This document shows, piece by piece, positions 51,639 through 59,305 of a stretch of DNA of 64,000 nucleotides (the stretch's first letter is position 1; every line of letters begins with the position of its first letter). The position numbers and the translations under genes are program-made. This DNA is from Lytechinus pictus (lineage: Eukaryota), in NCBI RefSeq assembly GCF_037042905.1, contig NC_087258.1, positions 15,748,001-15,812,000 of the forward strand, read 5' to 3'. Under the pieces are notes generated by a model, which saw nothing but the letters and a program-made list of their open reading frames with translations, made no database searches and was not told the DNA's origin.

Positions 51639-51710
51639 TCATGGGTAAACCAGTCTGGCGAAGGTCTCTGCGACAAGAAGAGGAAACAGGATCGATGCCT
51701 CCCCAAACAC
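51639..51710 (-). CDS. DHPS: DHPS-like coding exon 8
   Basis: [23 protein letters not shown]. Confidence 0.93.
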   Translation of the reverse strand: MFGEASILFPLLVAETFARLVYP

Positions 51711-54700
51711 CTGTATAAACGATATTAAAGACAAGTTCAATGACCTGTGTGCCGTTGCAGAAAGAGTTGCAATCAATCGCAACTCTAAAAATCATGCGAA
51801 ACTTGATTTTCAACCAATCAACAGCGCGCATTTGGGACTTGCGATTGATTTTTTGGTTTGCGTTTAAACGAAACTCTTTCTGCAACGGGCCCCTGGTCAC
51901 ACTGGTGAATCCGGCTACAGACCGACTAATCATAATACGTTATTTCCAATGGCGCTCTATCAGTCGGTTTGGCGCCAATTTCGTCGGTGTGAGACTGCGG
52001 CGATGTGAGACTGCAGCGTGAGACTGCCGCGATGGAGACAATAGCAGTTTTTGCTTCCACGACGCACGACGCCTTCGGAAACATAGCAAATTTATTGTTA
52101 GCGCCCTTCATAACAAAGGAGACTTTGTCGACAGTTCATGAATCAGAGCAGCAATTTTATTCATGCCTCTGGACAAACGACATATTTGCAATTTTTCGTC
52201 AGCTCGGAAACGTCGGACAAAACAGCTGTCCCCATTAACCAATTTTCGACAAAGAACCCTAGCTTTTCATTGTGATGAATTTTCAATGAATTTGCTGTGT
52301 GCAAGGAGTGATTCTGCGTCAGCTGTGACACACCGGAGAAACTGCTGTTCCCATTCAGATTTACCAATTTTCGACAAAGACCTAGCTTTTCATTGTGATG
52401 AATTTTTAATGCATTTGCTGAGTGCTAGGATTGATTCTGCGTTGCGGTACGAAAAAATCCTAATGGATTATTTGTTGCCCTATGTCAAATAAAATCTTCT
52501 TTAGATTGTATAAAGGGCGTGAGATGGGATGTTTTCAAAAAAGGGAGCCCTCAAATAACTACCCATCCCATTTAGTTTTACCGGAACGCGCCGGTTGAGG
52601 TACCCTTTTCTGGTCAGATATGGAATGCCAGATATATCCTATCCACTGGTAGTAGGCATTCGACCCCCGAATTTAATCCTTATTCTTTAAGATTTTTTTT
52701 AATGCCGCTTTAACACACGAGTCTATATATGGGAAATGTTTCAGGCTCGTGAGACCTTCATTATATTTACTTTAACGGGTTTCGCTGTGTCCTTGATCTT
52801 TCCCCACGATACTGCTTCCTCCGGCATAGCACCCGAGTCGGAACCATCGAATTCTTGGCCTGTGTTCATGTAGACCACGTAATCAGCTCCCTCTGGTTTG
52901 CGCTGTTATTTAAAAAAATATTTCAAAAAACTCAATTAGGAGCCCTTTACACAAAGATATTTGAATAGACTACAATGTAAAGTCAATCATACAATTAATC
53001 GCTAAGCTTTGTGTAACGAGCCCTGATTTGATTTGTTTCGGGTTTTTTCTTCTGTAATTATGCCGATACGATTGTTTAGATTCATACAATCTTTGAAGAT
53101 TTGCAATTACTGATTTTGCTTGTGTCTGAATGGATGCAAAATAAATGAATTGAAATTAAATAAAATGAAATATTGATGTATACATTTCAACTACGTTCAA
53201 ACGGGCCTGGTAAATCGTCCATCTTAATATATTTGTAAATGTTCATGTGGATGACGACATGAATGTGATTCTTAATTCAGTCTGGTTTTGGATAAAGAAT
53301 CACATCAATGTAGGCCTAAATCGAATCGACTCAATAATAATAGAAATTCTTTATTTCATATTTTACATAACTATTTTCTTCTCAAAAAGCACACATATAT
53401 AGTTACCAAGAATGAATAAAGCTTTTCTGTTTATTTGAATGTAAGACAAAAGAGCACTGTTGATCTAGTGCATTGCTCCCTCGAATTAGTGCCGAGGCCG
53501 TCTCCGGGAATCGAATCCCAGATTTTCATTTTCTAGTCAGACCACTCGGCCACGGCACCTCCACAATGTTAATGACAAAAGGAAACAATTAAACAAAATC
53601 ACGCGTTTGGGTCCTACATTACATACATTTAAAGGATTTTCAATCTTGTTTTTAAATCTAAAATGGTGGTGAGAAAAAATAGTTTCTTACATGAGCGTTC
53701 GCCTGACAGATATGATGCTTTCCTATTCCAGCCCCAACAGTTATCATACCAGTGTTTATTGAAGATTCAGCTATCTCGATTATGCGATTGCTATCTTTAA
53801 GGAGAAATATAGATGAGGCGGTGGAAGAAGGGGAGGGAGAGAAAGAGAGAGAGAGGTACTTAGCTTTCAACTTAAATGGATAGTGCGTTTGTTATGATTC
53901 CTCTTATTACCTAAAATAGACACGCGACTGACAGAATATGTAAATAAATATATAAATAAACAAATAGACAAATAAATGAATAAGAAATAAATACACATAT
54001 AAATAAACCAATTAACAAAATGGATAATTAAATGATTTAGACAAATAAATGAATGAAAATATAATGTATAAATGGATGAATAAATAATTGAATTAAGTTA
54101 ATTAATTAAAAAAATGAATGAATGAAAAGATAAATAGATGAAACAATAAATAATTGATTAAATGAATATCTAAATAACTGCATTTCAAATGAAAAAAAAT
54201 CATTGTAAGAAATGAATTCAGACTGGACCAACATGGATGCACTGTAAAAACTGCGGTGTTAAAACTGACACCAGTTGGTGTTAATAGAGGACCACACCGT
54301 GAGGTGTTAAAATTACACCCTAGAGATTAAAAACCAAAGCGTGTAAATGTAACAACCAAAGGTGTTGTAATGACACATATAGGTGTAAAACTAACACCAC
54401 CAATTCAACACCGGTGTAAAATAACTGGTGTGGTCCTCTATGTACACCGGTTAACACCACAGTATTTGCTGTGTGAAAATGTAAACAAGGCCCATGACAC
54501 ATCCTTATTATTTCAAAGTGATATCCAATATCATCCATCGATATAAAAAATGAAAATCCATAATTTATTGTTCGAAATAGACATGAAATGAAATACTCCG
54601 AAAATTTGCTTTGCCCAATTGATCGTGGGCCCGGCAGCCGCTGTGCAGCGCCAGATCGACGAGGCTCTATCCCTTAATCGTTGAACGCCAAACAGAGTAG

Positions 54701-57700: not shown

Positions 57701-59305
57701 TTGACGAATGTGTGGTGTGACTAAAAACATGATATGAGAGCTAAGATTCCTGGTACATTCTCACAACGAAGATATAATTGACCGTCATATCACTGATATT
57801 GAGAATACTCACAATTTTTCCCAAAGAGTATTCTTTTACTCTGTGATTCATTGCCGACATACTGAATCTAGCCATAGATAGAGAGCATCACATGCAAGTG
57901 CAACTTAAGGTCTTCGTATAGCTTCTTGAGTCAATAACTCACCAGGTTGTTCTTGGTGAGGAAGCACATGGTTTCTCGAAGGCCACTTGTGATGATACTT
58001 GATGCATAACCTAGGAAGATAGTACACTTAGAGGGCGCCCTAGCCGTCCAGGTTTCAGAACTGTGCCGACTGTAATTCTCCATCATTGTCCATTTCTCCT
58101 CCTCTGTCAGGGGTTCAACTTTCTTAGCCAGCTAAAAGAAAAGAGGCAAAAATCCTTTACTCTCCGAAGACTAGATACTTCATACTTTACCTACCATACC
58201 CTCCACTAGACATGACTTGTATAATGACCCAAGAAGATCTATCATACCTCCCTTTGGATTCCTGAAAGTACTACATCTGGGACACCATATAGACTAGGAA
58301 CAAAGAGTGACAACAGAATCGATCAGCGTAAGCCGCGGATGGTTATTTGCTTTGTCTGATTATATAGGGGTGCTAGTGAAATGACGGTTATATTTATAAA
58401 CGAGGATTTATTTATTTATCTATTTATAACAAAATAAATAAAACAAATGACACCTACAACCCCCAACGTCGTTTTTAACCATGTTTTCCTCACTTCAAAT
58501 CCATTATTTGAACTATAATGAAATCAATGATATGCCATCACTGGCGTACCTAGGATTTTCCAGAGGGGGGGCAAATTTTATGGAGGATTTTTCGTCCGCG
58601 AAAAAATTTGACAAGCCGAAAAAAAAAAAAAGGTCTTCAGTTTAGTTCACGTCCCCTGTATCAGTTGTGACTCGTCAGGGGGCAGGAATACGTCCCTTGC
58701 ATGAGTTGTGACTCGTCAGGGGGCAGTCTGCCTGCGCTAGTGTATGCCATGACTGGAAGAGAGGTAGACCATCTTTAACACTATGTATAACGATCCGTAG
58801 GCCTAAGTTATAGAACAAGACACCACTTGGAATAAAGCCGACCTCACCGTCCAAGATCAACCCCTTCTATCAATTGCCCTCGCTTCAGAAATAGCCAAAC
58901 CATAGAAAAAAAGACAAAATGGAGGGAGTCATGACAGGGACTGGAACATACCATTCTCTTGATCTCCTCCACTGCAGCGCCAAAGTTTGAGGCTTGAAAC
59001 CCGACGGTCCGCATCGACTCCATGATCTTGTTATAATCGATGGCCTGGCTGAAGTCATACCCTCTGACGGGGAGCGGATTACTCGATGTCAAATCATTGA
59101 TCTTATCCTCAATGCTCCCCGATGACAACTCCGCGGGGAGTTCCCTGTAGGTTTCCCGGAGTTCATAGGCGCCGGTAGACGACTGGGTGGTCGAGGTGGA
59201 GGGTGGGGACCGGACTGACTGAGAATAGGTTGGGGACGAAGCAATAGAACGGCAGCATAGGCGAACAGAAGGTGTGCTTAAAGCCTGGAAAATTCGTGCA
59301 TACAT
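51639..59305 (-). CDS. DHPS: Deoxyhypusine synthase-like protein (divergent paralog, putative mitochondrial presequence), 8 coding exons, 422 aa
   Basis: Exons 58952-59305, 57943-58131, 57340-57558, 55595-55681, 54850-54961, 53691-53794, 52771-52902, 51639-51710; all GT-AG, in phase, no stops. Motifs [62 protein letters not shown]. Confidence 0.95.
52160..52450. repeat. Dispersed repeat family, unclassified (also ~15852-16020, ~44326-44490, ~59832-60000)
   Basis: Shared core GCAATTTTTCGTCAGCTC...CTGTCCC...CCAATTTTCGACAA, found in both orientations. Confidence 0.6.
52771..52902 (-). CDS. DHPS: DHPS-like coding exon 7
   Basis: [32 protein letters not shown]. Confidence 0.95.
53440..53563 (-). 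mobile_element. Degenerate tRNA-derived SINE
   Basis: Minus strand reads GTGGCCGAGTGG...GATTCGATTCC; same family as the fragment at ~16060-16167. Confidence 0.5.
53691..53794 (-). CDS. DHPS: DHPS-like coding exon 6
   Basis: [21 protein letters not shown]. Confidence 0.93.
54240..54473. mobile_element. CMC/EnSpm-like MITE (copy 3, inverted)
   Basis: Reverse complement of 6180-6418; TG flanks. Confidence 0.75.
54555..54810 (-). mobile_element. tRNA-derived SINE with MetaSINE-like central domain
   Basis: Minus strand reads TGGCTCAGTTGGTAGAGCG...GGTTCAAACCCC then GTCAGACCAAAAGACGTTAAAAGATGG; split fragments of the same family at ~55805-56243. Confidence 0.75.
54850..54961 (-). CDS. DHPS: DHPS-like coding exon 5
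   Basis: [19 protein letters not shown]...IDIAE. Confidence 0.95.
55458..55570. mobile_element. hAT-like MITE
   Basis: CAGTG.CGGACCGTGACCCGGAGG hairpin arms; 8-bp TSD TGTGTACG (55450-55457, 55571-55578). Confidence 0.85.
55595..55681 (-). CDS. DHPS: DHPS-like coding exon 4
   Basis: [29 protein letters not shown]. Confidence 0.95.
57340..57558 (-). CDS. DHPS: DHPS-like coding exon 3
   Basis: [18 protein letters not shown]...NRAGNIFVP. Confidence 0.95.
57943..58131 (-). CDS. DHPS: DHPS-like coding exon 2
   Basis: [19 protein letters not shown]. Confidence 0.93.
58539..58742. mobile_element. hAT-like MITE
   Basis: CACTGGCG...CGCTAGTG ends; TSD TATGCCAT (58531-58538, 58743-58750). Confidence 0.8.
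58952..59305 (-). CDS. DHPS: DHPS-like coding exon 1
   Basis: [10 protein letters not shown]...VRGYDF...GFQASNFG...KRM. Confidence 0.9.

Follow-up and report, generated by a model that had tools for sequence, protein, structure and literature searches.

A divergent deoxyhypusine synthase paralogue of sea urchins with a conserved catalytic core and a replaced eIF5A-docking surface

Deoxyhypusine synthase (DHS; DHPS in human) is the enzyme that activates the translation factor eIF5A, and hypusination is usually described as a matter of one enzyme and one substrate. To our knowledge, the plant homospermidine synthases (HSS) and the trypanosomatid prozyme are the sole well-studied escapes from this rule. 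Here, we analysed a stretch of 64,000 nucleotides from the sea urchin Lytechinus pictus (NCBI RefSeq assembly GCF_037042905.1, contig NC_087258.1, positions 15,748,001 to 15,812,000 of the forward strand; hereafter the window), which carries a DHPS-like gene that is intact, spliced and transcribed. We found that this gene belongs to a fast-evolving clade of sea-urchin paralogues. As read from the alignment, the strongest and coherent change across this clade concerns the docking surface for eIF5A, the acceptor protein of DHS, and the mouth of the active-site tunnel.

A spliced DHPS-like gene in the window

The gene lies on the minus strand at positions 51639-59305 of the window. Minus-strand translation of 51.4-59.5 kb gave eight open DHPS-like segments whose borders were then read, leading to a model of eight coding exons, 1269 nt and 422 residues followed by TGA; all seven introns are GT-AG and the window sequence has no N runs. 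PF01916, the DS profile, is matched by the exon translations (E 3.9e-20 for exon 3, 2.3e-15 for exon 7, and others) and is also precomputed for XP_063965203.1, the NCBI protein "deoxyhypusine synthase-like [Lytechinus pictus]", to which our own 422-residue model is identical throughout. The gene is thus already annotated at NCBI, without functional study, and we found no paper on a sea-urchin DHS paralogue in the literature searched. An earlier note on this DNA, made from the letters alone, had placed a DHPS-like coding sequence at 51639-58131; the coding sequence is real, but this span begins at exon 2 and leaves out exon 1. The features are listed below in the direction of transcription, h marking human numbering.

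59306..59323, minus strand: part of the 5′ untranslated region (UTR) in exon 1, with an AG acceptor at 59325-59324
58952..59305, minus strand: exon 1, 118 codons, 354 nt; start ATG at 59305-59303 with A at -3, GT donor at 58951; spliced reads join 58952 to 58131; N-terminal extension, then the homologue of the DHS ball-and-chain/N-terminal arm
59165..59305, minus strand: acid-free N-terminal leader within exon 1, 47 residues, 4 Arg, Ser/Thr-rich, of mitochondrial-presequence-like composition
57943..58131, minus strand: exon 2, 63 codons, 189 nt; enlarged variable loop (human 77-94 region) and the motif GYASSI; read joints 58131/58952 and 57941/57556
58005-58003, 57999-57997 and 57990-57988, minus strand: changes hT104A, hN106S and hS109T, respectively, in exon 2
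57340..57558, minus strand: exon 3, 73 codons, 219 nt; aligns to residues 125-196 of human DHS (PDB chains)
57525-57520, 57414-57412 and 57405-57403, minus strand: in exon 3, E193/E194 (hE136/E137) kept, hN173E, and hY176 kept, respectively; [10 protein letters not shown] stands in place of VPNENYCKFE
55595..55681, minus strand: exon 4, 29 codons, 87 nt, equal in length to canonical DHPS; borders joined by reads
54850..54961, minus strand: exon 5, 112 nt, phase-1 end; D295 (hD238) and D300 (hD243) kept; 2-residue insertion
54922-54890, minus strand: interface changes hS240G, hM244E, hF247Y and hY250R in exon 5
53691..53794, minus strand: exon 6, 104 nt; hI271E, hF272S, hN267I and hG283A; K346/H347 (hK287/H288), hI290 and hN294 kept; read joint 53794/54850; helix HICQANAH with hN292Q, hL295A (53696-53694) and hM296H
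52771..52902, minus strand: exon 7, 44 codons, 132 nt; 2-residue insertion (RKPEG) and hD322E; D374, D377, E384, W388 and catalytic K390 (hD313, D316, E323, W327 and K329) kept, the lysine codon at 52800-52798
51639..51710, minus strand: exon 8, 23 codons and TGA (51641-51639); 72 nt against 141 nt in canonical urchin DHPS, giving a shorter C-terminus

RNA evidence came from L. pictus itself: three RNA-seq runs of 2026 and one transcript assembly were mapped on 53500-59499. The spliced reads, although of low depth, fit the predicted borders of introns 1 to 5 exactly, and the first mate is always on the plus strand, as expected if a minus-strand RNA is sequenced from a dUTP-type library. Introns 6 and 7 fall outside the mapped interval; the intron at exon 7 is backed by the identical NCBI model and by nine other loci in which the exons are arranged alike. 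A 3445-nt transcript contig spans exons 6 to 1 with zero mismatches. Its record positions 2523-2895 end at 59324 and about 550 nt continue further 5′, which together with the AG acceptor at 59325-59324 indicates at least one upstream non-coding 5′ exon. The frame is open for six codons upstream of the ATG, and the position of the annotated start methionine is conserved in all five orthologues presented below. The RNA reads also carry amino-acid variants in exons 6 and 3, namely E330G (53767, human position I271), I226V (57426), N218K (57448) and R209C (57477).

The introns appear to hold transcribed repeats of their own. In intron 5, a tRNA-Val(CAC)-like sequence at 54742-54812 on the minus strand was detected by ARAGORN and by the Rfam tRNA model (34.6 bits). 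The surrounding region (~54100-54900) has very high two-stranded RNA depth, with many reads running on into unrelated sequence, and looks like the head of a tRNA-derived short interspersed nuclear element (SINE) with many expressed copies; a related repeat piece lies near 56060-56230 in intron 3. Two-stranded RNA coverage at 58500-58900 and 55300-55900 (introns 1 and 3), where contig depth reaches 300-390, probably reflects further transcribed repeats.

Distribution, origin and selection of the paralogue

L. pictus also possesses a canonical DHPS of 380 residues, encoded on a different chromosome from the window gene. Protein searches with the L. pictus and Diadema divergent copies identified such copies, 410-424 residues long, in L. 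pictus, L. variegatus, Strongylocentrotus purpuratus, Diadema antillarum and D. setosum. Their identity to the L. pictus divergent copy is 96% in L. variegatus (same 90% cluster), 79% in S. purpuratus and 61% in both Diadema species. The same five species have canonical copies of 375-380 residues that are 55-59% identical to the divergent copy. The divergent copies stand on both sides of the Diadema-camarodont split, which goes back roughly 200 million years or more. Among the matches listed, starfish, crinoids, a sea cucumber and hemichordates gave canonical-type proteins only. When exon 3 alone was used in a HMMER library search, mostly fragments were returned, and full-length proteins were reached via a scaffold-plus-exon alignment. 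The only close match of this exon-3 search, a fragment from an ENA assembly, is 72% identical to exon 3 of the window and 80% identical to the S. purpuratus paralogue, which points to a sixth species with the paralogue.

In a maximum-likelihood (ML) tree of 43 animal DHPS (LG+C20+F+G4), the five divergent copies form one clade (support 100/100), whose stem measures 1.16 substitutions per site and whose sister group is canonical echinoid DHPS (support 81/73). The Lytechinus-Diadema path measures 1.37 for the paralogue against ~0.25 for the canonical copy, that is, the paralogue evolves ~5-6 times faster. The window gene, standing in its own long-branch clade in genomes that each have a separate canonical copy, is thus not the orthologue of the single-copy DHPS gene that is essential and evolves slowly. 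The earlier note had named a grouping with canonical echinoderm DHPS on a branch of normal length as an outcome that would refute its reading, and no such grouping was seen. Placement of the paralogue outside the canonical echinoderms was not rejected by the approximately unbiased (AU) test (p 0.41), which leaves the duplication undated. Altogether, the tree and the taxon distribution favour an echinoid-specific origin, short of proving it.

Exon structures, recovered from known proteins at nine further loci and for one shark (Callorhinchus) DHPS, bear on how the copy arose. The exons of canonical urchin DHPS measure 192, 168, 219, 87, 106, 104, 126 and 141 nt, and those of the paralogue 354, 189, 219, 87, 112, 104, 132 and 72 nt. 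In alignment column and in phase, each of the seven introns of the paralogue coincides with one of canonical urchin DHPS, including that of L. pictus, and with one of Callorhinchus DHPS, the shark gene having one extra intron. This sharing confirms a duplication at the DNA level and led us to reject both a retrogene origin and a horizontal transfer. It agrees with the earlier note, which had judged the intron positions to be common with vertebrate DHPS and had preferred gene duplication to horizontal transfer; the canonical copy elsewhere in the same genome fits as well.

Two side observations were made in these searches. Between the close species D. antillarum and D. setosum, the paralogue loci show a large intron turnover with identical exon sizes: intron 1 measures 9.6 kb in the former and 2.9 kb in the latter, and intron 6 measures 0.7 and 6.5 kb. 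In addition, annotated "DHS" proteins of 620-735 residues from five Asteraceae and one millipede gave very high scores and contain two DHS-like units each; in these cases, gene prediction may have fused tandem duplicates of the DHS/HSS type.

Selection was measured as the pairwise ratio of non-synonymous to synonymous substitution (dN/dS, or omega) by the Nei-Gojobori method (NG86), with three species pairs per gene. The paralogue and the canonical gene gave 0.112 and 0.014 for L. pictus - L. variegatus, 0.117 and 0.024 for L. pictus - S. purpuratus, and 0.163 and 0.019 for D. antillarum - D. setosum, respectively. As dS is alike in the paralogue and the canonical gene (0.159 against 0.158; 0.92 against 0.88), we conclude that the paralogue is under purifying selection 5-8 times weaker than that on the canonical gene, and that it is kept by such selection in at least three genera. 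A pseudogene was rejected, given the intact open reading frames (ORFs) in five species and an omega of 0.11-0.16. Across the five paralogues, 207 of the 353 core columns are invariant, and 34 differences are fixed between paralogue and canonical copies.

Catalytic core and eIF5A-docking surface

The five paralogues were aligned with 198 canonical animal DHPS and numbered via a 369-residue mammalian sequence, in a register that agrees with the PDB alignment; human numbering is used below unless K390 is named. E136, E137, D238, D243, H288, D313, D316, E323, W327 and K329 are kept in all five paralogues, and so are R165, K287, Y176, I290 and N294. The first ten together with R165 and K287 are the residues that the earlier note had listed as retained. 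Presumably D238 and D313 have roles with NAD (nicotinamide adenine dinucleotide; Lee et al. 2001), and we take T104, N106, S109 and G283 to be contacts of the NAD site (Liao 1998; Lee 2001). Judging from the alignment and from the roles described for the catalytic K329 and other DHS active-site residues (PMC10042821, PMC7773846), the paralogue lacks none of the residues that NAD-dependent dehydrogenation of spermidine is known to require, and it has the lysine that forms the enzyme-imine. Consistent with this, an AlphaFold2 model built on a 72-sequence alignment reached a predicted local distance difference test (pLDDT) score of 82.5, and Foldseek superposed it on human DHS chains with template modelling (TM) scores of 0.95-0.96 and a root mean square deviation of 1.4-1.7 Å.

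The earlier note had seen in this locus a rewiring of the substrate and NAD pockets. The motif changes it listed are all present ([42 protein letters not shown] (+2 aa), AMPEE and FGEAS), but their reading has to be revised. The spermidine pocket is essentially unchanged, with D243, D316, E323, H288 and W327 kept and N292Q limited to one sub-lineage. T104A, N106S, G283A and N292Q are real without being clade-wide: T104A and N292Q occur in Lytechinus and Strongylocentrotus only, Diadema having T and N, while N106S and G283A are each found in four of the five paralogues. D342E is not a derived change at all, since E occupies this position in 76% of the 198 canonical sequences and in every canonical echinoderm copy. 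The changes in the NAD pocket are thus few, conservative and not common to all paralogues, and we rejected its rewiring as the main theme. Nonetheless, T104, N106 and N292 are invariant and N173 is 97% conserved among the canonical sequences, so that the changes of the paralogue at these sites are not due to chance.

At the N-terminus, the paralogues differ from canonical DHPS in a presequence-like character. All five begin with 40-54 residues without Asp or Glu, with four basic residues and rich in Ser/Thr; the first acidic residue stands at position 40-54 against 2-6 in the canonical copies. The maximal hydrophobic moment of the leader is 0.56-0.66 against 0.29-0.41, these being measures of composition and not the output of a dedicated predictor. 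Between Diadema and the camarodonts, the leader is not conserved in sequence, and it is disordered in the AlphaFold2 model (pLDDT below 50 for residues 1-53). The paralogue protein may therefore be mitochondrial.

A conserved fold and a largely conserved core would also suit a regulatory subunit that forms heterotetramers with the canonical DHS and modulates it, like DHSp of trypanosomatids. In T. brucei, DHSc and DHSp assemble into such heterotetramers with a 3000-fold activation (PMC3663545). Moreover, the paralogue keeps I290, which appears to be the site of a plant I-to-V change that was read there as reducing heterotetramers (PMC11848025). However, to keep the catalytic lysine and all acidic residues for spermidine and NAD in five of five species makes little sense for a dead partner, and a catalytically dead prozyme was rejected on account of K329 and the intact core. 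There is strong divergence in the N-terminal arm, which wraps around the adjacent subunit, and the presequence-like extension suggests a compartment other than that of cytosolic DHS. We thus consider a regulatory role improbable.

The clade-wide rewiring lies in a part of the protein that the earlier note, focused on the pockets, had not named. In human DHS, the interface with eIF5A is composed of Q83, N173, Y176, S240, M244, F247, Y250, I271, F272 and L295 (Wator et al. 2023, PMC10042821). In each alanine mutant of this interface, eIF5A recruitment is almost lost; hypusination is abolished by N173A, by Y176A and by L295A, and several mutants including N173A have a raised oxidoreductase activity (PMC10042821). 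N173S is also a recurrent human disease allele with ~20% activity (PMC9117371). In all five paralogues, eight of the nine alignable docking residues are replaced (N173E, S240G, M244E, F247Y, Y250R/Q/E, I271E/Q, F272S/D and L295A), a marked departure from a functional eIF5A deoxyhypusine synthase (EC 2.5.1.46); Y176 is the sole one kept and Q83 falls in a variable loop. Around these lie further fixed replacements, at sites whose conservation in canonical DHPS exceeds 90%: S109T, T146F/Y, R159W/F, G162N/R, I166A/G, N175H/L, E180T, W182F, N267I, I280T, M296H and D322E. Altogether, the whole clade is fixed for fourteen derived states at conserved sites, including N173E, S240G, M244E, F247Y, L295A, M296H, N267I and I280T, and changes are also seen at residues 16-19 of the ball helix, the plug of the tunnel.

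Could the paralogue still be a deoxyhypusine synthase, acting on eIF5A or on a co-evolved eIF5A paralogue as a compartment- or tissue-specific isoenzyme, with a docking surface that changed along with its partner? The whole catalytic core and Y176 are kept, the fold matches human DHS with a TM score of 0.95 and the gene is under purifying selection. From the structural work on the human complex (PMC10042821), one may also suppose that the acidic replacements N173E, M244E and I271E could attract the basic hypusination loop. Yet in the human enzyme, single changes at N173 or L295 are enough to abolish hypusination, and here eight such positions are changed together, L295 being literally replaced by alanine. 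In addition, the canonical copy is strongly constrained (omega ~0.02), which indicates that the essential DHS task is already covered. We therefore hold this explanation to be unlikely, though it is the least unlikely of those we set against our preferred one.

A slowly decaying, redundant duplicate without specific function, in which the changes reflect relaxed constraint only, would account for the higher omega, for long branches found throughout the clade and not just on its stem, for changes that differ between lineages at otherwise invariant sites (T104, N106, N292 and G283) and for the amino-acid polymorphism in the RNA reads. However, the three independent comparisons all gave an omega far lower than 1, ORFs of eight exons are intact across the Diadema-camarodont split, and the gene is transcribed and correctly spliced. 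Indeed, the replacements fixed clade-wide leave the catalytic residues untouched. Decay is the least credible of the explanations that we weighed.

Candidate activities and known DHS systems

We favour the reading that the paralogue is an echinoid-specific, neofunctionalised DHS duplicate: an enzyme still active as aminobutyl transferase or spermidine dehydrogenase, whose acceptor is not eIF5A and which is analogous to plant HSS. We give it a probability of about 0.55. The earlier note had likewise proposed an active enzyme with another partner, a proposal that appears reasonable in view of the intact catalytic core and the purifying selection. In the mechanism we propose, NAD and spermidine would still be bound, spermidine would be oxidised and its 4-aminobutyl group loaded on K390, from which it would no longer be passed to Lys50 of eIF5A. 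A small amine could be the acceptor instead: homospermidine would result from putrescine, and canavalmine-type tetraamines from spermidine. As another possibility, an abortive half-reaction would yield 1,3-diaminopropane and delta1-pyrroline. Both outcomes have precedents in DHS, which can use putrescine as an acceptor to form homospermidine and which, in the absence of an acceptor, cleaves spermidine and releases diaminopropane and pyrroline (PMC9117371). The reaction might take place in mitochondria, as suggested by the acid-free, Arg/Ser-rich N-terminal extension.

A more speculative proposal is that the paralogue is a mitochondrial aminobutyl transferase whose target is some protein other than eIF5A, on which it would place a modification resembling deoxyhypusine; the remodelled, more charged docking surface would have been selected for the new protein substrate. 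We regard this proposal as improbable. If true, animals would possess a second modification system of the hypusine type.

Several points weigh against the non-eIF5A acceptor that we favour. The ball-and-chain arm, which is needed for tetramer formation in human DHS (PMC7226451), is strongly diverged in the paralogue. T104, N106, S109 and G283, at least 98% conserved in canonical DHPS, are changed in some or all paralogues, which could impair cofactor binding. The VxxxD signature of plant HSS, whose absence the earlier note had pointed out correctly, is missing from all five paralogues, which keep I290 and N294, hence there is no sequence marker for homospermidine synthesis; the literature searched held nothing relevant on homospermidine or unusual polyamines in sea urchins. 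The activity proposed here is deduced from sequence and predicted fold, and the mitochondrial location from composition. Finally, with the weaker constraint on the paralogue and non-synonymous RNA variants (four of the ten listed exonic variants, the other six being synonymous), part of the divergence may be simple relaxation.

Should the favoured reading hold, polyamine metabolism in the sea urchin, a major model of development, would have a branch that has so far gone unrecognised; this branch could make homospermidine or another aminobutyl product, break down spermidine or modify a protein in a new way. The clade-wide substitutions would also provide a natural mutagenesis set that separates DHS catalysis from eIF5A recognition.

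Compared with canonical eukaryotic DHS (human DHPS, PDB 1RLZ/6XXJ/8A0E; PF01916), the urchin paralogue has ~51% identity, a fold that matches with TM scores of 0.95-0.96, the same intron positions and an identical set of catalytic lysine and acidic residues for spermidine and NAD. It differs in being a second copy with a replaced docking surface and a ~6 times faster evolution, and in having an N-terminal extension of ~54 residues and two 2-residue insertions. Like the trypanosomatid DHSp/DHSc pair, it is a lineage-specific DHS duplicate that strongly diverged from the canonical enzyme (PMC3663545), but the trypanosomatid partner is catalytically dead whereas the urchin paralogue has Lys329 and the full active-site set.

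Plant HSS (EC 2.5.1.45) was derived from DHS on repeated occasions. It uses either putrescine or spermidine, and the change N273D, within the IxxxN motif, cost it the ability to modify eIF5A (PMC11848025). Plant positions 269 and 273 would correspond to human I290 and N294, the latter being next to L295, so that N273D would map to the helix that bears L295A, M296H and the camarodont N292Q in the urchin paralogue. Both are DHS duplicates under relaxed yet purifying selection in which the catalytic chemistry appears to be kept and the part recognising eIF5A is changed. While the plant enzymes carry the VxxxD/IxxxD motif, the urchin copy keeps IxxxN, has many more interface residues changed and possesses a presequence-like N-terminus, and its origin is independent and in animals. 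The likeness to HSS is therefore one of functional analogy and not of membership, with a loss of eIF5A recognition that is suggested by the replaced interface. In this sense, the urchin paralogue would be an independent and convergent case of the HSS-type evolutionary route, in an animal.

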